Shown: positions 51,684 through 64,000 of the stretch, piece by piece
How the letters are laid out: every line of letters begins with the position of its first letter
Numbering within the stretch: the first letter of the stretch is position 1
Assembly: GCA_977017575.1 (NCBI GenBank)
Contig: CDRNVI010000042.1
Coordinates: 119,756-183,755, forward strand
Length of the DNA stretch: 64,000 nucleotides
DNA from: Paramoeba atlantica
Taxonomy: Eukaryota > Protista > Discosea
Direction of reading: 5' to 3'
Notes under the pieces: generated by a model
Database searches by the model: none
Told to the model about the DNA's origin: nothing
The model's input: the letters and a program-made list of their open reading frames with translations, nothing else
Position numbers and translations under genes: made by a program

Positions 51684-53060
51684 ATCAAGGACTGTTCGCT
51701 TGTAGTCAATTGATGAGACAATAAATTTACCGCGTCCAACATTGGCTAATTCCGAAAGCGGGGCATCGATGGATGCGCAATACTTCCTTTCCAGAGCACA
51801 CTTGTATTTTTACAAACTTTTTTCTCTAAGCTTCCATCGCTAGCTTCATCTTTTTCTTCTTCTATGCCCAGCTCATCAGTGCTTTCCACACCCATGAGAT
51901 GAATGAAATATGGCATGCGGTACGTTCAGTATAAGGTGCCGTATGAGAAACTCCTGTGTAAATCCTAAATTCGACTGATGAAATAAGAGTCTTAATCTTC
52001 TTTTCTTTTTTCTCTGGATAATGTGCTTTACCACTAAATCCTAGAAAAACATAGACGTAGAACATGGTCTGTAGAAATGTATAAATTATGCATGATTTGT
52101 TTTTGGAGAAATAGTAATAAAATTTATATGTAATAATATACACGTATGTATGTCACGTGTATGTCACGCGGTCGGTGTCGGGGGCGTTTTTCCAATTGCG
52201 ACCACCACACGGGTCATGCTCCACTTCCAAAATCACACGCGCAAACATTCCCTCCACGGCAATGCGCGAACGCAGGAGAACCACGTGCCGCAGCCCACCC
52301 GTCAATTCGCCCGCCTCTGCAGGAAAACTCCGAAGCTGTCGAAGTCTTTCTACAAAGGATGCCGACACTTTCGGGCAATCAACTGTACCAATGTCTGTCC
52401 GCGCCTGCCGAAGCAGTCGTCGGCAGACCGCTCCAAGAGACCTCTCATGACGGTCTCGAGCCTTTTCAATAATTCGATCCTCCTCTTTTTGTTGAGATCC
52501 GTGAGATATACTTTAGATATTTAATGGCCCATGCTACGTTACATATTATATTCACTCAAAATAATAGTTTCGCGTGTTTTCCGTTCCTTTATTTATTCAC
52601 ATGTTACCAGAGTTTGCGCACACACCTATCGAAATGTCTCCTACGCACTCTATACGCACGAAAAATAAAGGTAACCTGATAAATGAAAAGGGGAAACGAT
52701 CAAGATCCAAGGAGAAGCGTGAAAATGCGAATACGCACAACAACCAAAAAACACGAAAAACTGATGGAAAAAGGAGTACGAATACATATTCACCAGGATT
52801 AGCAGAGGTAACTTTAGCAAGAAAGCATCCACAAAGAAAGCGAGCTAATTGTGAAGAGGAGTGCAAGAGAACTCGAAAGGGGGGGAGCTCTTCTTCTAAA
52901 ACGTGATTTTGGAAGCCCAAAAGTTGAATGGAGTATCATTTTATTTATTTTGTTTATTTATTTATTTTTACTTTTATTTTATATTCAATAATGCGATTAA
53001 TTGGTCTGTTTCAGCAGTTGAAGAGGGGGTTGTGAGACGAAGGGTTGTTCATATATTTAT

Positions 53061-53442
53061 AAACCCCCCACAGCGAAAAGTCACCCCCCTCTAACTTTTC
53101 AGCCAAGTGTCCGTTTGAGCTCATTTTTGTTGCATTTTGCTGTTCCCAACACAAAGACTATGCGCGTTATAGCATGAAACCAAGGCTCTCAAATGCGTGC
53201 ATCCGATAGATGGATTATCACTTTCTTCACATTTTTCAAGAGGCCAATTTCTCACACTTTAACAAATTATATCTTCTCCTCCCATGAGAATTCTAATTAT
53301 TTCTGTCCGTTTTTGCTGATTTTTGTTGCAAACGAGAGATCTCGTTCTCCTAGCAAAGATCTTTGCCGCTATTTTTTAATATTGACCCACTTGTGCCCCC
53401 TGGCCGCGGAGTGTTTGTTTTCCTAAATTATTGTGGTATGAC
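53061..53442. mobile_element. Left ~380 bp of the MITE at 59453-60389 (near-identical copy), truncated by fusion to Tc1
   Basis: Sequence matches 59453-59846 from AAACCCCCCACAGCG to GTGGTATGAC. Confidence 0.92.
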
Positions 53443-54494
53443 AGCTGCGCCGCGAGGGCGTTGCTGATGTTGTTCCTCAGTCTATCCGAGTTTCGATGCA
53501 CCGCTTCGGACACAAAGGTAGAAAGCGTGTCCGCAAGCCCTACCTGTCCAAGCGCCATCGCAAGCTTCGGATGGACTTTGCCACGGCCCATGAGCACTGG
53601 ACAGTGCACGACTGGGCTCCAGTTGTATGGTCGGACGAGACGAAGATCTCGCGCTTTGAAACGGGGGGAAGTCTTTGGACATGGGGGACCCCGGGGGAGG
53701 AACTGGGTGAAAAAGGGGTAATTCCCACGGTAAAGTACGGAGGGGGGCACATCATGATTTGGGCGTGCATGTCCCGAAGCGGTGTGGGGCATGTGCGTCT
53801 AGTTCAAGGGAACCTGAACGCCACACAGTACGTCGAGATTCTTGAAGAGAATCTTGCCCCCTCCATCGAAACTATGGGTCTAGACCCCCCAATGGTCATC
53901 TTCCAACAAGATAATGACCCCAAGCACACAAGCCATTGTGCGCAACGGCACCTCCGGGGTACCGGGTTTGAAGTCATGCGGTGGCCCACGCAGTCCCCTG
54001 ACTTAAATCCAATCGAAAACGTTTGGGGGGAACTCAAGCGGCGCCTTGCAGCGCACGATGATCCACCAAGCGGGGTCCGAGAGTTGTGGGAGAGGGTAAA
54101 AATGGAATGGGCGAACATACCACCCTCAGTATGTCGTGCCCAGGTGGACAGTATGCCTGCCCGTATGAAGGCAGTGCTGAAGGCTCGTGGGGGGAATACT
54201 AAATACTAATTTTAGGGGCATAATCTCTCTTGGGCGATTACGTTTCATCTATTTTTTGGGACAAGATTTTCTCTATAATAGGTAGCAAAAAAACCTTTCG
54301 AATGCTAAACTTTTTTATATTCATTCTTATTTCTTTGGTAGAACGAACTGAGGTGAACTATCTACGGGTACTATTAGGTGACACTCATGCCTACACTACT
54401 AGCACACATTACCAGCGCAACGGTGATATTTAATCAATAGCTCTATACAAAAGAAAAAAAAACCGAAACATTCGAACGGTTTTTTTGCTGACTG
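53442..54494 (+). mobile_element. Tc1-family (DD34E) transposon arm, 5'-truncated; transposase ORF to 54209
   Basis: WSDETK, FQQDNDPKH and SPDLNPIENVW with 34 residues between the second D and E; ends TTTTTTTGCTGACTG followed by TA. Confidence 0.95.
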
Positions 54495-55580
54495 TATGCC
54501 GATGATATTGTGTTCTTTTCACCTGAAAGAAAGACGCTCCAAGAAATGTTAGTAGCCTTAACGAGAGTTGCAGAACGAGCTGGGCTTAAACTTAACATAG
54601 GTCCGTCAAAAACAGCTTGGATGGTAATCGGAGGACGATTGAACGTATGGACAAATGATACGATTACTCTAGGAAATTACGGCATTGTACCTAGGGCTGA
54701 CTCATATCGATATCTAGGCCACATGAAACACTCGCATAAGAATCGAGCCACTTTACAAGACCGTATACAATTAGCTTGGAGAGCATTTCATCGCTTAAAG
54801 CCGCTCTGGAGGGAACATTTAAGTGTAACGCTCCGCCTGAGAATATTTAATGCTCTTGTAACATCAGTTTTGTCGTACGGTTTAGCCTCTTTGGTTCCGA
54901 CAGGTGTAGAATTAAAGATACTTGACACAGAAGTCAATAAGATGCGCAGAATAGCGACAGGGACGCCGTTGTGGGATGGTTATAGCAAATACCAACATGT
55001 GCGCTGTATAGGGGAGAACCGAAAGTTTCAACGCTCCTGAGAGTCAACCGCGCTAAACTAGTTGGACACCTTTTGCGGCATGATTCCCCTATTGCGAATG
55101 TTGCATTATGGAACATAAGGGAAGAGGCACGCATACGCTCATTGACTGAAGCTTGTGCCCAGGATCTAGCAATAGATCCAATAGAAATGCACGAACGGGC
55201 ACTTGATCGATGTTCTTGGCGTAATCTTATTCAGAATTTGTACCAACGACTAGAACCTATCGCCTATTATAATCCTTTTGATTCAACTAAAAGAATAGCA
55301 GAAGTTGCAAAGATTTTGCAATCGAATCAAAACTCTCTGGAAAAATGGCACGCATTGCAGTTTCAAGAGGAGGGTGAGACACTTTGGCCCCATAACAACT
55401 TGCTTCATATATATTGTGATGGTTCAGTGAGAAAGCTTTCGAACAATATATTCGCAGGGGCATGTGCTGTAGCCTTCGAAGGAAACGAGATTCTAGCGAC
55501 TAACGACAAAACATTGGACTCTATTAACGCAACACCAATACGGGCAGAGCTTTCAGCTTTCTTATTGGCATACGGTGACC
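54495..55580 (+). mobile_element. 3' half of an RTE-like non-LTR retrotransposon: RT from YADD onward plus truncated RNase H
   Basis: TAT GCC GAT GAT (YADD) at 54495, GLKLN..KT, YRYLG, RIQLAWRAF, VLSYG; after a frameshift KLVGHLLRH, DRCSWR, then IYCDGS and RAELSA. Confidence 0.88.
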
Positions 55581-56830
55581 GCCAGCCCTGCCGCCAGTCT
55601 TGTTGTAATTTATGCTGCTAACGAGCATGTTCCCCAACTGATCCGTTGGGTCCTCGATGCTTCAGAAGAAGCTGGATGAGTGGTGGTCGTGCTGGTGTTG
55701 GGGTCCTGATTGTCGCGTGAACTATTTTTTGGGAAATCTTTTGGAGGAATCTTTTTGGGGAGTGAAGAACACGGGTGCGAATTCGTCGTCGATGGTGCGT
55801 GTTCTGATGTGACTCGGTTCGCTTCTTTGGGATTCGGCGGTGATGATGCGTGTTCTGATCGAGATATGATTCGATTCGATTCGATTCTTGTATAGAAATC
55901 GGGGGCGGTGTCGTAGCGCTTTTGAAGCTAGAGAGTAGCTGGATCCCAGCGCGTGCGTCAGATTGCGTTGCATTATTTGCGAAGTAGATTTTCCTACGTC
56001 GAACGAGGTCTTTGGTCGATGCTACCAACGGATTTGTCTGTTGATGGGGCGGTGATGGGGCTTGAGCCGATTCTTGTGCGGGATTTGGCGGCAGTGATAC
56101 GCGTTCTGGCCGCGATGTTGTGACTTGATTGGATTCTTGCGTGGGATTTTGCGGCGGTGCGTGTTCTGGCCGCGGTGTTTTTTTTTTTTTTTTTGGTACA
56201 TGGAGAAAATCTTTGCCACAACCGCCTCGACCGCCACCCGGTGTCCAACCGGCAGGCCTTTCTTGGTCGAGTGAGCTGGCCACCTTCCAGTGGCAAGATG
56301 AATGGGTGTTTCCACCCACGCACCTCAGGGGAGACACCTCATTACAGGGTAGTGCGAGACTTGCATACCAGAGTTTTGTTGAATCTCGGATTGCGTCAGA
56401 GACTCTGGTAGCTCACTCGCTAAAAACTCCACTGCTCCGGATTGTTAGTCCAGGAGCGCTCCTAGCGTGGAGAAACGAAGGACCTAGCCTAGAAAAAAGG
56501 ATCTAGTCCCTTCGCCTCTCCGGGAGATGGGGAGGGATAAAACCTCAGCTAGCACCAATGCCGTTCCACCTCCACCGAGGGGGTAGGGTTAGCGCGCTCG
56601 CTAACAACACACATGCCTCGGCAACGGGATGCTACCCCGTCTACGCCCCGGAACGCGGTTAACGACGCCGCGAACAAGGGTTGAACAGGAATAGGAACGG
56701 ACACATTCCCTCCTGCCAGCTCGGAAACCCTTACGTCGGAAGGCTGGGGTCGCCACGCCCCATCACCGGCAACGTTCCAATGCCGGGCTCCTGACCTCAT
56801 CTTCCCCTTCTGACGCACCCAAAAGGATAT
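55580..56830 (-). other. GC-rich low-complexity segment, probably a retroelement leader/ORF1 remnant
   Basis: Recurrent GCGTGTTCTG motif, diverged ~60-bp duplication at 56069-56180, repeated peptides PxNPxQES and NTHHxRRI; origin inferred. Confidence 0.4.
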
Positions 56831-56869
56831 GCCGTGGCAATGACGATCCAGTTAGGATAAACAAAAAGG

Positions 56870-57187
56870 GGTGTATTGCCGCTTGCACGTGTTCTGGGCG
56901 TCCAGCAAAGCCCTGTTAGTGCTGTAGAAAGAAAACATCGGAAATACGTTGTAGAGAAAGGATTAGAACCAGAGTATTTTCGTTGCATCGCTTTAACGGA
57001 TTGTGGAATGTTACATGAAGATGCCAAGGTCTTGATCAAAGCCCTTGCAAAACGAGCGGATTCTGACCCAAAAGTTATACTTGAAGCTTTTCAATTGGAA
57101 AATGAAAAGTTTGCGGCTTACACTATCGTATCGCAATTGCGGAACCACATACAGGGAGAAAAATGGCTAGGTGGCATAAGCCTTTGA
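56870..57187 (+). mobile_element. 3' fragment of a CRE/SLACS-like (restriction-like endonuclease) non-LTR element
   Basis: AVERKHRKYV..FRCIALTDCGMLHEDAKVLIKALA..SQLRN aligns by eye with the ORF at 57858-58376. Confidence 0.65.
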
Positions 57188-57690
57188 AGCCAAATAATCT
57201 TCTAGTCTCCAAAGTCAAGTCTATCTCGTATTATTCAACATGGGCACAGATACAGGACCCAACAACAACATGGGCACAGATACAGGACACTAAACTCTGA
57301 GGGCTATTAAAAGGACAAAATTCCTTTTTGTTTAAGAAAGAAAGGTATTTTCTTTAGAAATAGATTTTTATATGAGGAAAATCCATATAAAAAGTGGGTA
57401 GGCTTCCGGTGGGCCTAGGAGGGTGCACACCAAAAAAAAATTATATCTACGTATAAATATACATCATCATCATACGATAATGAGAACTTGTGAAAGTAAT
57501 TGAAGCATTTATATGTAGAATAAGAAGTATGCATGCTGATCGAATTATTTATGATTAATTATGCAGTGTGATTTCAAAAGACCTTTCCATTCACGCTCTT
57601 CCTCAAAAACCCCCTTTTTGTTTAATACCCCCTTTATATACCCGTGTGGGATGCTAATCCCCACGTGGGACGTACGAAACCATGTAGTCC

Positions 57691-57810
57691 TTAAATAAAA
57701 AACCAAGCATCAAATAGCTCCTCATCAAACGATTCTTGCTTCTCTTTCTTTGCACCAGCCGTCGGGGAGTAAACATTAAATATACACGCCTTCATCTTTC
57801 CAATATGCAT
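57691..57810 (-). mobile_element. Fragment of a non-LTR AP endonuclease
   Basis: IFNVYSPTAGAKKEKQESFDEEL matches the APE motif NVYAPT...EK..FYEEL. Confidence 0.65.
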
Positions 57811-58376
57811 TGCTCCTTTCATAATGCGATCATTGATCTTTTCAACACCTTTCAAGCTTGAAAGCTGGCATTCCTTGTGAGAAGGAACCGCGCCTATATT
57901 CAACGTATCGGTGCACGCAATGCAATGAAGTAGTCGGGCCAGAATACAGGCAGACACATAGTAAAGTGTGCGGAGGGAAATCTTTTCGGCGCTCTGGACC
58001 AGATCTCGTAATTTACTGGAATGATGGAGAAATATATTACGATTTCACCGTGGTACATGAATTAGCGCCTTCAAATTTGGGAACGAAATGCAATAAGCTA
58101 TTCCGGGACGCCATCAAACGAAAACACGATACTTATGTCGCAACAAATAAAATCGCGAAAGAAAAATTCAGATGTATTCCCATCCTCTATGGTGGATCCC
58201 TCCATTTCAATACGAAGTCGCTGTTAATGGCCCTCGCAGATGCGGGCAGCGTACCTCGACAGCAGCTTCAGCTTGAGCTACAACTTTTGCTACAGGAGCA
58301 AAATGGTGCCATACTATATTCACAACTTCGGAATTACCTTGAGAAGGACAAGGGGGCACTCCAGTTCGCTATATAA
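57810..58376 (+). mobile_element. 3' fragment of a CRE/SLACS-like REL endonuclease non-LTR element
   Basis: HNAII, AGIPCEKEP, GPDLVI, YDFTVVH, KRKHDTY and FRCIP (PD..D..K type). Confidence 0.75.
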
Positions 58377-58500
58377 AGAGTTTCTAAAGAGGGGAAGAGC
58401 TTCTAAAGCCTGCAGTCAGGATAGATTTTTCAGAACTTGAGATAGTAATTGGCGCATTTACATAACATATATACATGTATATATATACATGTATATATAT

Positions 58501-59434
58501 AAACCCCCGCTCACGAAAAGTGACCCCCCTCTTTTTTTTTGTACAAATGTCCGTTTGAGCTGATTTTTGTTGCATTTTGCAGATCTCAACACAAGGACTT
58601 TGCGCGTGAAGAAATGAGACAAAAAGAAACGAATACGCACAATTTAGAGAAGAATTACCATTTTGTCACTTTTTCGCCCTTCAATCTTATACACTCCTTA
58701 AGTCCAGAATCAAAACTTAATACTGTTTTGTCGATCACTTTTTGAGTTAAAGAAGATCATGCTTTACGTACACATCGGATAAGTGAAGGTTTGTCCGATG
58801 GCGTTTGTTCGTCTACCGCCTCTTGGACCATAGACCAGACGTTTTCTATGGGGGAAAGGTCGGGCGAGTTGGGGGGCCAGTTTCTTAGAACATCACTCAT
58901 TCGATTCTCAATATACTCTTTGGAGGCACGGGCAGTATGTGCCGTTGCTCTATCCTGTTGAAATACACTATTAGGGGGAAATCTACCTGTTTTAATGTTT
59001 CTATGTACGTCTCACTTGTAATAGATGTGTCATTGTAGATGTCTCACTTGTAATAGATGGTCACAGGACTCAAAGTGTATTCCTCACTAGATTTTTTTTC
59101 GTTCTGATATTTTTTGATTATCCTTCTAGAGACGTTAAAATCACGGGATAATTGTTTAATCGGAACACCTTCTGCCTGTCTCATCTTCAAAAGAACCTTA
59201 CCACAATCCGTAAGCCCCCTTTTGGGAGCCGATATGGTGATTTTGTCATTTTTGGAAAAAAAAGTTGAAAAACCAATTATGTTTTTGTGACTAAATTTTA
59301 AAATTTTAAAATCAGCTAAAAACAGCGGGAACGTATAGATCTCGAAATTTTGAACGAAACAGTGGTATGATAACCCACCCACGCCCCTCTGTGCTAAAAA
59401 TAAGGGGGGGTCACTTATTCGTGAGCGGAGGTTT
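58501..59434 (-). mobile_element. Internally deleted Tc1-like element (DD35E) with ~30-bp TIRs in TA repeats
   Basis: TIRs AAACCCCCGCTCACGAAAAGTGACCCCCC / GGGGGGGTCACTTATTCGTGAGCGGAGGTTT. On the - strand: HTH GVPIKQLSRDFNVSRRIIKKY (~59200-59100) and FQQD...WPPNSPDLSPIENVW (58963-58835). Confidence 0.88.
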
Positions 59435-59452
59435 ATATATATATATATATAT

Positions 59453-60389
59453 AAACCCCCCACAGCGAAAAGTCACCCTCTAACTTTTCCCCCTCTAACT
59501 TTTCAGCCAAGTGTCCGTTTGAGCTCATTTTTGTTGCATTTTGCTGTTCCCAACACAAAGACTATGCGCGTTATAGCATGAAACCAAGGCTCTCAAATGC
59601 GTGCATCCGATAGATGGATTATCACTTTCTTCACATTTTTCAAGAGGCCAATTTCTCACACTTTAACAAATTATATCTTCTCCTCCCATGAGAATTCTAA
59701 TTATTTCTGTCCGTTTTTGCTGATTTTTGTTGCAAACGAGAGATCTCGTTCTCCTAGCAAAGATCTTTGCCGCTATTTTTTAATATTGACCCACTTGTGC
59801 CCCCTGGCCGCGGAGTGTTTGTTTTCCTAAATTATTGTGGTATGACGATGCAAAAAAATCAAACCTAAAAACAATTTTCTTCTTCAGTTTCTAAAATGAT
59901 CTAAAAATGGTGGGAACGTGTAGATCTCAGAATTTTGAACGAGAAAATGATATCTTGACCCCCTTAGGCCCCTTCAAGCAAAAAGTAAAGGGGACAGCTT
60001 AAAAAAGTTGATTTATCACCGTTTCAAGAAAGAACCAATCAAAGAGAAATATTCCACCACGTGACAAATTGAATGTTTGTTATCTGTTTTTGATCATTTT
60101 TGTTGCAATCGAGAGAACTCGTTCCCCTAGCGAAGATCTGTGACACCATTTTCATGTTGACCCCCTTCCCCCCCTGGTCGAGGAACATGGGATTTTTTGG
60201 GTAATATTGGCATGACTATGTAAAAACGTCATTAAAAAAATGAGTTTTAATTTGTTATCTGTGAAGAGGTCTAAAAACAGCGGGAACGTGCAGATCTCAA
60301 AATTTTGAACGAAAAAGTGGTGCCGCAACCCCCCTAAGCCTCGTTGTACAAAAAAAAGAAGGAGGTGACTTATTCGCTGCGGGGGGTTT
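59453..60389. mobile_element. 937-bp non-coding MITE related to the 58501-59434 element
   Basis: TIRs AAACCCCCCACAGCGAAAAGTCACC / GGTGACTTATTCGCTGCGGGGGGTTT; (TA)n on both sides; internal diverged duplications. Confidence 0.88.
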
Positions 60390-60645
60390 ATATATATATT
60401 TATAAATTGTATTTATACGTTATTATTTGTTTTAGTTGTGTTTCGCCAGCAGATAAGGTGGCCAAGTGTATGGGAGGTGAGTTGGAGGACATTTTCGCCC
60501 CTATAGGGCCATTCTCATAAGAAAGTAATGAGGATGCACGAGTTCTTGGCTGCAGATGGACTCTTTGCGCGTAAATTTTATGTGAGTTTACATGGAGAAG
60601 TGTTTATGTTTATGGTGTAAATTGTAAACCCCCCAGCTGATACAT

Positions 60646-61609
60646 ATGTATCAGTGTCTTTGTTGTTGTTGTGTTGTATGGTGGGTAGCGTATGAACGGG
60701 TACCCGAGAAGCTGTTTCCGTTCCCCCCCGAAGACGATAGGGTAGTGGTCTGCGGAGGACGTGTCAAAGTTCCAAGGAAGAAGCAGTCTGAGAGGAAGCG
60801 TCGGTATTTCTTTCGGAAAGATGCTGAGCGTGGCAACCTCAGCCAAGAGATTCAAAGCAATTCCAATGCCAGGAACAAGAGTTTGACGATTATGTCACTA
60901 AATGTAACAACACTTGACCTTAAAGGGGGTGACAATGACCGAAAACAGTGCTTCTTCAGCAGCAATTTTGCATCTCATTAATGAGGTGTACTCCTCTGGT
61001 CAAATTCCACTCTCTTAGCAGGAAATTCTACACATTTCGATTCCTAAAAAGGGCGACCTTTCAAGTCTTACGAACTGGCAAGCAATCTGTCTCACGAATC
61101 ACATCGTAAAAATAATGAATAACATGATACTGAATCGCATACAAGCGATTATTGAACCAAAACTGAGGAACAACCAATTTGGTTTCCGGCCACTGCGTTC
61201 CACGGTTGGTGCCCAGGCGATCCTAACTGAGATTATTCAAAAAGCATTAAGGGGACCACAAGGCATTTTTCTTGGGTTCGTAGACTTTAAAGGGGCCTTT
61301 CCATCCATATCTCACGGGGCTATTGCAGAATGCTTGACAGCATTTTCAATCCCGCCTATGTTAAATCGAATGATTTTGGCGACAAACGAATCTCCGACAG
61401 GGTATGTGAAAACACAATTTGGCAAAACAGAAAACTTTGAAATCGCATCTGGGGTTCTCCAAGGTGATGTTTTGGCACCTTTATTTTCGTAATGTGTCTC
61501 GACAAGATTTTAGAGTTGGCCATGCAAATCCAATTTTCGGGTTAACTCTTTTTCGTTCGGGAACAAAAAGCCGTGGAGTTCAACAGTTAAGAATAACGGA
61601 CGTGGATTA
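60646..61609 (+). mobile_element. 5' half of the RTE-like element: APE start, internal deletion, RT domains up to the Y of YADD
   Basis: SLTIMSLNVTTL (60880), IPKKGDLSSLTNWQAICL, NQFGFRPLRST, FVDFKGAFPSISH, GVLQGDVLAP and ITDVD-TA; one in-frame stop plus frameshifts. Confidence 0.9.
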
Positions 61610-62902
61610 CAGTCAGCAAAAAAACCGTTCGAATGTTTCGGTTTTTTTTTCTTTTGTATAGAGCTATTGATTAAATATCACCGTTGCGCTGGTAATGTGT
61701 GCTAGTAGTGTAGGCATGAGTGTCACCTAATAGTACCCGTAGATAGTTCATCTCAGTTCGTTCTACCAAAGAAATAAGAATGAATATAAAAAAGTTTAGC
61801 ATTCGAAAGGTTTTTTTGCTACCTATTATAGAGAAAATCTTGTCCCAAAAAATAGATGAAACGTAATCGCCCAAGAGAGATTATGCCCTAAATTAGTATT
61901 TAGTATTCCCCCCACGAGCCTTCAGCACTGCCTTCATACGGGCAGGCATACTGTCCACCTGGGCACGACATACTGAGGGTGGTATGTTCGCCCATTCCAT
62001 TTTTACCCTCTCCCACAACTCTCGGACCCCGCTTGGTGGATCATCGTGCGCTGCAAGGCGCCGCTTGAGTTCCCCCCCAAACGTTTTCGATTGGATTTAA
62101 GTCAGGGGACTGCGTGGGCCACCGCATGACTTCAAACCGGTACCCCGGAGGTGCCGTTGCGCACAATGGCTTGTGTGCTTGGGGTCATTATCTTGTTGGA
62201 AGATGACCATTGGGGGGTCTAGACCCATAGTTTCGATGGAGGGGGCAAGATTCTCTTCAAGAATCTCGACGTACTGTGTGGCGTTCAGGTTCCCTTGAAC
62301 TAGACGCACATGCCCCACACCGCTTCGGGACATGCACGCCCAAATCATGATGTGCCCCCCTCCGTACTTTACCGTGGGAATTACCCCTTTTTCACCCAGT
62401 TCCTCCCCCGGGGTCCCCCATGTCCAAAGACTTCCCCCCGTTTCAAAGCGCGAGATCTTCGTCTCGTCCGACCATACAACTGGAGCCCAGTCGTGCACTG
62501 TCCAGTGCTCATGGGCCGTGGCAAAGTCATCCGAAGCTTGCGATGGCGCTTGGACAGGTAGGGCTTGCGGACACGCTTTCTACCTTTGTGTCCGAAGCGG
62601 TGCATCGAAACTCGGATAGACTGAGGAACAACATCAGCAACGCCCTCGCGGCGCAGCTGAGATGATACCTCTCGCGCAGAATTTCCGGAGAACACAAGTC
62701 GTCGCACACGGCGTGTGCACGGCTCGGAAAGCTTTCGAGGGCGTCCACCCTGCATCCTGAGAGTATCAGGCCTTTCTTTTTTAATATCATAGAAATTGTT
62801 GAGATACTTAAATTTACAGTATCAGAGATGGACCTCATAGACACACCGCTGTCGTAGAGCTCTGCAATTTGTTTCTTTACGTAACGTGGTGTGGGCCTCA
62901 TA
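61610..62902 (-). mobile_element. Tc1 (DD34E) inverted arm; transposase (start at 62901) broken by three single-base deletions
   Basis: Reverse complement of the + copies; 1-nt losses in the A7 run, in ATGGAC and in AACCCG; begins TA-CAGTCAGCAAAAAAA. Confidence 0.95.
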
Positions 62903-62997
62903 GAAAATAAGAATTTTAGGTAAGAAGAATTTTAGGTTATAGAGTTTATCTTACACTATTACATTGTTTATCTTACACTGTTACATTTGCACTCTAT

Positions 62998-64000
62998 ATG
63001 AGGCCCACACCACGTTACGTAAAGAAACAAATTGCAGAGCTCTACGACAGCGGTGTGTCTATGAGGTCCATCTCTGATACTGTAAATTTAAGTATCTCAA
63101 CAATTTCTATGATATTAAAAAAAGAAAGGCCTGATACTCTCAGGATGCAGGGTGGACGCCCTCGAAAGCTTTCCGAGCCGTGCACACGCCGTGTGCGACG
63201 ACTTGTGTTCTCCGGAAATTCTGCGCGAGAGGTATCATCTCAGCTGCGCCGCAAGGGCGTTGCTGATGTTGTTCCTCAGTCTATCCGAGTTTCGATGCAC
63301 CGCTTCGGACACAAAGGTAGAAAGCGTGTCCGCAAGCCCTACCTGTCCAAGCGCCATCGCAAGCTTCGGATGGACTTTGCCACGGCCCATGAGCACTGGA
63401 CAGTGCACGACTGGGCTCCAGTTGTATGGTCGGACGAGACGAAGATCTCGCGCTTTGAAACGGGGGGAATTCTTTGGACATGGGGGACCCCGGGGGAGGA
63501 ACTGGGTGAAAAAGGGGTAATTCCCACGGTAAAGTACGGAGGGGGGCACATCATGATTTGGGCGTGCATGTCCCGAAGCGGTGTGGGGCATGTGCGTCTA
63601 GTTCAAGGGAACCTGAACGCCACACAGTACGTCGAGATTCTTGAAGAGAATCTTGCCCCCTCCATCGAAACTATGGGTCTAGACCCCCCAATGGTCATCT
63701 TCCAACAAGATAATGACCCCAAGCACACAAGCCATTGTGCGCAACGGCACCTCCGGGGTACCGGGTTTGAAGTCATGCGGTGGCCCCCGCAGTCCCCTGA
63801 CTTAAATCCAATCGAAAACGTTTGGGGGGAACTCAAGCGGCGCCTTGCAGCGCACGATGATCCACCAAGCGGGGTCCGAGAGTTGTGGGAGAGGGTAAAA
63901 ATGGAATGGGCGAACATACCACCCTCAGTATGTCGTGCCCAGGTGGACAGTATGCCTGCCCGTATGAAGGCAGTGCTGAAGGCTCGTGGGGGGAATACTA
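62998..64000 (+). CDS. Apparently intact Tc1 DD34E transposase running off the window (missed by the ORF track because no stop is included)
   Basis: ATG at 62998 (MRPTPRYVKKQIAELYDSGVSMRSISD...), HTH, GRPRKLS linker, WSDE, QQDND and SPDLNPIE; in frame through GGNT at 64000. Confidence 0.9.
   Translation, partial: MRPTPRYVKKQIAELYDSGVSMRSISDTVNLSISTISMILKKERPDTLRMQGGRPRKLSEPCTRRVRRLVFSGNSAREVSSQLRRKGVADVVPQSIRVSMHRFGHKGRKRVRKPYLSKRHRKLRMDFATAHEHWTVHDWAPVVWSDETKISRFETGGILWTWGTPGEELGEKGVIPTVKYGGGHIMIWACMSRSGVGHVRLVQGNLNATQYVEILEENLAPSIETMGLDPPMVIFQQDNDPKHTSHCAQRHLRGTGFEVMRWPPQSPDLNPIENVWGELKRRLAAHDDPPSGVRELWERVKMEWANIPPSVCRAQVDSMPARMKAVLKARGGNT

Follow-up and report, generated by a model that had tools for sequence, protein, structure and literature searches.

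A palindromic Tc1 element with two divergent transposase genes in a kinetoplastid genome

The element at the contig end

The window, meaning the whole stretch of 64,000 nucleotides that was analysed, is C42:119756-183755, and its right edge coincides with the end of contig C42. At this right end lies a Tc1 (DD34E) element of ~2.69 kb, formed by two inverted arms around a short spacer. Each arm holds an entire transposase gene together with one and the same end. The element interrupts the RT gene of a non-LTR retrotransposon. The 5' part of this gene, the target DNA (60900-61607, plus strand, start approximate; PF00078 match at 61115-61489), is followed by the left copy of the TA target-site duplication (61608-61609), located in the DYADD codons. 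The left arm (61610-62902, minus strand) comprises the inverted ORF, the 3' UTR and the end, with a length of 1,293 nt here and 1,297 nt in intact copies. Its end region of ~215 nt (61610-61823) corresponds to the ancestral right TIR, with a terminal site starting at 61610 and an inverted inner copy at ~61799-61823 (repeat I14), both presumably bound by the transposase.

The inverted arms, described as near-identical in the initial annotation, were recovered by repeat search at 61610-62902 and 62997-64000 (pairs I2/I4/I6/I8/I10), and their BLAST alignment of 1,005 nt, which contains 4 gaps, shows 99.3% identity. Arm alignment also bore out that the mirror symmetry begins at the T of TATG (positions 62902 and 62997), that the spacer (62903-62996) holds no copy of the terminus, and that a left TIR is missing. 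The spacer is AT-rich and asymmetric, pyrimidine-rich directly upstream of each ATG on the own strand of that ATG, and without significant fold. It measures 94 nt, compared with 95 nt in other copies, the difference being one T fewer in a T run.

The right arm (62997-64000, plus strand) is cut by the contig end, and its ORF (62998-64000, plus strand) is open over 334 of the 336 codons, including the DD34E triad (D146, D238, E273). The left ORF (61893-62901, minus strand) has four 1-nt indels in this assembly, each in a homopolymer run. In the copies on contigs C6, C11 and C12 both ORFs are intact (336 aa), whereas the left ORF of the window copy is frameshifted. Two similar one-base losses were found in the flanking RT gene. 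Since these are missing from the homologous contig C26, the frameshifts probably stem from low accuracy near the contig end.

Because the window stops at the contig end, the right end of the element was not directly readable in C42. Contig C59 starts with arm positions 762-1297 (536 nt), after which come TA and the remainder of the RT gene. It overlaps the last ~244 nt of C42, with 0 differences from the C6 arm, and therefore places the expected end of the element at about 64293. The annotation had predicted an end at ~64290 followed by TA and the flank, and C59 has exactly this RT flank after the arm end.

A 5'-truncated right arm with its TA was found at 53442-54496 (plus strand; arm positions 245-1297). 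After this arm comes the 3' half of the interrupted RT gene, an arrangement that makes the piece a local duplicate of the element's right junction. The order over 53052-61607 is a partial MITE joined to the truncated arm, the RT 3' half, 3.9 kb, MITEs, the RT 5' half and then the element. At 55572 in the window, one base replaces a 2.3-2.6-kb stretch of C26 and C59. This duplication, close to the contig end as it is, may be either a genuine rearrangement or a misassembly. A variant at arm position 791 (62113 and 53988 regions) is common to the left arm and the 53-kb copy, and missing from the right arm and C59. It is also present in one C12 arm, consistent with exchange between arms or copies. 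TA-flanked, MITE-like repeats of ~950 bp are abundant (window 53052-53441, 58480-59440 and 59443-60400), with ~40 scored copies at 92-99% and many further candidates.

The transposase contains PF01498 and PF13358 above the cut-off and a weak PF13412 (N-terminal HTH, DDE_3). Its best PDB match was 5cr4 (Sleeping Beauty, E 1.3e-56), and it aligns with SB100X. The triad, with its spacing of 34, is present both in the window element's family (family A) and in a second family, B. The element ends are inverted and begin with CAG. An inner site matches the terminal site at 21/26 positions, 212 nt from the end, in the window family, and at 20/26 positions, 213 nt from the end, in family B. In the IR/DR subgroup (Sleeping Beauty, Minos), TIRs of 200-250 nt carry the inner site in direct orientation; here, it is inverted relative to the terminal site, which is reminiscent of Tc3.

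Sleeping Beauty and Tc1 share with the element the DD34E triad, the N-terminal HTH domains, the CAG-start ends, the TA duplication and a transposase of ~340 aa. They differ in that left and right TIRs frame a single ORF, whereas here there are two ORFs, no left TIR, and a repeat that is the whole gene. Because of this unusual layout, the element was filed as a structural variant of Tc1, based on enzyme, ends and TSD.

Copies, sister families and outside relatives

Complete copies were found in contigs C6, C11 and C12, as the initial annotation had anticipated for a mobile palindrome. Each consists of a 1,297-nt arm, a 95-nt spacer and a 1,297-nt arm, with TA on both sides, unrelated flanks and an intact ORF in each arm. 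The two arms differ at 0, 1 and 3 positions, respectively, and the C6 copy is located between two host genes on the same strand. These copies, together with C59, confirmed a mobile unit of ~2.7 kb whose arms are whole transposase genes and in which the same end is used twice. The identical spacer recurs at at least 10 loci. TA was read at 27/27 distinct end junctions in the loci examined, and the assembly, which carries both haplotypes, contains 37 exact matches to the 17-nt end; copy counts are lower bounds.

On the homologous contig C26 the same site is unfilled, with a single TA and an RT frame continuous through DYADD, and the short-read contig X1 carries the same empty allele. The whole palindrome was therefore inserted at one TA, as one unit and recently enough to differ between haplotypes. 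Cut-and-paste activity is predicted for the transposase, and the polymorphic insertion is an indirect sign of it.

Most copies are damaged, many by deletion in one arm or across the centre. Copies with a one-arm deletion, both ends and one whole ORF (L067 and L068, with C71 as a decayed case) are in effect ordinary elements, and each form was seen only at a single site. In L046/L047 (C60, C51), a whole arm and the spacer are followed by 45 nt of the second arm, an 11-nt end stub and the closing TA; the C60 ORF is intact. An old one-arm remnant (L028:801-1500, C39/C40) has an upstream region unlike the spacer. It was considered as an ordinary left end and rejected, as the upstream DNA is unique in the genome and has no terminus.

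Both arms within each family carry identical family-specific changes, a pattern that requires the arms to exchange sequence. The spacer of one locus is inverted between the allelic contigs C21 and C166, the mark expected of crossover or template switching between arms.

The best non-self protein match (52% identity) belongs to family B, which is likewise double and is present in this genome. Its arms measure 1,306 nt and its spacer 55 nt, the mirror symmetry once more begins at the T of TATG, and two intact ORFs are found at C30. In subfamily A' (78-86%), two A'-type ORF starts flank a distinct spacer of 67-69 nt, with centres at C71 and C30/C3. Divergent pairs were also found in subfamily B' (~80%), e.g. 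C12:421747-424349; B', the B and C copies of this genome and some allelic sites are known from search coordinates only. In each of the four groups (A, A', B, B'), the symmetry boundary coincides with the start codon. A and A' differ by 122 third-position changes, compared with 34 first- and 27 second-position changes, and this predominance indicates that the ORF was under purifying selection. Further Tc1 ORFs, with 46-50% identity to family B, were found on C8, C52, C15, C53, C29:601419, C49:31072 and C90.

In all three spacers scored (A, A', B), 17-19 of the 25 nt before each ATG are pyrimidines on the own strand, compared with a host mean of ~14/25 (shuffle p 0.001-0.004, for a measure chosen post hoc). 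A reading of the spacer as a degenerate hairpin was dropped, as its folding was no better than that of shuffles.

Families A and B are sisters, with a support of 0.976 (FastTree, 51 proteins, rooted on the distant family C). Their nearest relatives, at 37-47% identity, are single-ORF, long-TIR Tc1 elements from soil metagenomes and fungal-looking contigs (L071, L072, L075-L154). They resemble A and B in end sequence and have TIRs of ~210 nt in which the inner site is inverted, a feature kept in A and B at 212-213 nt from the end. Unlike A and B, they have a left TIR, and a TATA-like 5' region precedes their single ORF. Among the 70 outside relatives with at least 200 nt upstream, none had an inverted ORF there and 64 had an ordinary left-right TIR pair, a count biased against palindromes, since short-read assemblies collapse them and such contigs fail the 200-nt filter. 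Viral contigs yielded no relative. The twin layout is an inherited family trait, and its simplest history would be one left-end replacement in an ancestor of A and B.

Host background

The DNA comes from a kinetoplastid, most likely a Perkinsela-like amoeba symbiont, as judged from gene content. The window genes are intronless and lie on one strand. Apart from longer fused proteins, the named matches of the window helicase were mostly from kinetoplastids, and its best match (59%) was from a EukProt transcriptome labelled PhM_4, which we take to be a prokinetoplastid. Only one dynein heavy chain, as an allelic pair, was found in the genome, and a search run without positive control found no paraflagellar rod protein in it. 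Both observations favour a Perkinsela-like host because Perkinsela has lost its flagellum, while keeping polycistronic transcription and trans-splicing (PMC5601477). UTRs in Perkinsela are very short, and splice acceptors are non-canonical (PMC5601477). Polycistronic transcription would apply here because the host is a kinetoplastid. A trypanosomatid spliced-leader pattern had no match at 3 mismatches, which is uninformative.

The genome also contains Argonaute genes, with a Piwi domain and ~975 codons, and an antisense arm should therefore be costly. Argonaute-like genes are present in three and two nearby copies on C29 and C49, and a weaker Piwi-domain gene lies just outside the window (C42:115027).

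A distant Tc1-like family, C (23% identity, 373 aa, ~1.57 kb, ~110-nt TIRs), has a single ORF. It was probably active recently, as this genome has at least 10 full copies that are near-identical (98-100%), e.g. L069:8321-9442 (C12:574217-575867). As this single-ORF family has multiplied, the palindrome is not needed for spread in this host.

Origin and maintenance of the twin-gene layout

The element is very probably an autonomous Tc1 cut-and-paste transposon in which an inverted copy of everything that begins with the start codon and extends through the right end took the place of the left end. Transposase from either arm would bind the ~215-nt end on both sides and excise the whole palindrome. 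Arms may be homogenised, and the spacer flipped, by recombination or template switching between them, and strand slippage on the palindrome could produce the one-arm deletion copies. In a host whose transcripts are long polycistrons, the ancestral 5' promoter region would be useless, and a short spacer working both ways could offer a trans-splicing signal to whichever ORF is in the sense direction. That the layout persists through such two-way use of read-through transcription has, in our judgement, a little under an even chance of being right. We put forward only tentatively the broader idea that the twin-gene palindrome is an adaptation to a promoter-free, trans-spliced genome, with a two-way splice-acceptor spacer, mutually repairing arms, and an antisense arm that would feed Argonaute and limit the element. 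Hairpin or antisense RNA would be expected from the palindrome.

An assembly artefact or fold-back read chimera was suggested by the surroundings of the window copy, which is at a contig end with homopolymer errors and duplicated, partly deleted DNA around it. For the family this is refuted: complete copies lie within three contigs, with unique flanks on both sides and a unique asymmetric spacer, the site has an empty allele, and a second family has its own spacer. In addition, a second assembly (ENA ERZ24900291), apparently of the same organism, contains the C12 copy, and all three of its arm-specific differences recur there, an agreement that tests the assembly and not the biology, as both may be built from the same reads. 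Four runs of a single study, none of them recorded as RNA, gave Logan contigs of which none spans the element. That two ordinary Tc1 copies were inserted head to head by chance, or that two full elements form a composite, is highly improbable. Composites with inverted IS630 modules do exist (PMC11544213), but no inner ends, central TA duplication or cargo were found here, one spacer recurs across the loci, and no ordinary A- or B-type single-ORF element with a distinct left TIR turned up. Tn630-NC1 and Tn5 resemble the element in having two inverted transposase modules moved by the outer ends. In those elements, however, each module retains its inner end, kilobases of cargo lie between the modules, and Tn630-NC1 is a single inactive locus in a bacterium (PMC11544213); the spacers of 55-95 nt here contain no inner end and no cargo.

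Two further readings accept the same mobile unit. The layout could be a frozen accident, a head-to-head dimer that lost its inner ends once and was kept by well-transposing identical ends and arm repair, with no link to host transcription. Arm homogenisation is evident, single-ORF family C thrives in this host, and mariner lineages in ordinary genomes have had their 5' part replaced by the 3' part, as in Rpmar17 and Rpmar49 of Rhodnius prolixus, where the inverted 3' part yields long TIRs with transposase sequence and central deletions recur (PMC4678618). Those elements are non-autonomous, mostly <1 kb and have no whole ORF in the arms (PMC4678618), whereas two intact ORFs are present here in C6, C11 and C12, and in family B at C30. 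Recurrent one-arm deletions should also restore a shorter ordinary element, yet the A and B masters stayed double across ~48% protein divergence, and the shared start-codon boundary fits selection on both ORFs. We consider such an accident rather unlikely. Less likely again is a spacer that acts as a two-way promoter, a miniature divergent strand-switch as raised in the initial annotation, with both ORFs expressed without read-through. The divergent ORFs agree with it, as do AT-rich spacers whose core length and polarity are similar across A, A' and B, and outward-facing genes would make transposase expression independent of flanking transcription, as argued for Tn630-NC1 (PMC11544213). But the spacer sequence is poorly conserved, and 55-95 nt is far below the 671 bp that on average separate divergent blocks of Perkinsela genes (PMC5601477 supplement).

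Galileo, a foldback-like element, is similar in having TIRs of up to ~1.25 kb that were reshaped by recombination. It differs in belonging to the P superfamily, in its internally repetitive arms and in having the longest TIRs in copies without ORF (PMC3573991), whereas the long arms here are made up of the ORF with its 3' region, which sets them apart from foldback elements (FB, Galileo).

A recently mobile Tc1 in a basal kinetoplastid would alter the picture of kinetoplastids as poor in DNA transposons. Trypanosomatid genomes are reported without any (PMC12278014), and the only report of a kinetoplastid DNA transposon that we found is Merlin of Bodo saltans and Perkinsela, which belongs to another superfamily, has no TIRs or TSDs and was judged inactive (PMC8101967). 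Neither a twin-ORF Tc1 nor a kinetoplastid Tc1 was found in the literature within a search that had most subscription journals and Repbase outside its reach. A heritable, near-perfect coding palindrome of 2.7 kb is unexpected, being deletion-prone DNA and a source of antisense RNA in an Argonaute host. The element lends itself to a direct test of the way in which a transposon that depends on promoters adapts to polycistronic transcription; single-ORF family C and the natural one-arm deletions are built-in controls. Similar elements elsewhere may be missed, since short-read assemblies collapse them.

Two further loci adjoin or contain family sequences. At L056:976-7651 (C63), ~6.7 kb with rearranged arm pieces, spacer and unrelated ORFs lie between two family-A ends, possibly a cargo-carrying derivative. 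At L068:4871-5494, an ORF with a hAT dimerisation domain adjoins a copy of family B, which hints that the host has yet another superfamily of DNA transposons.
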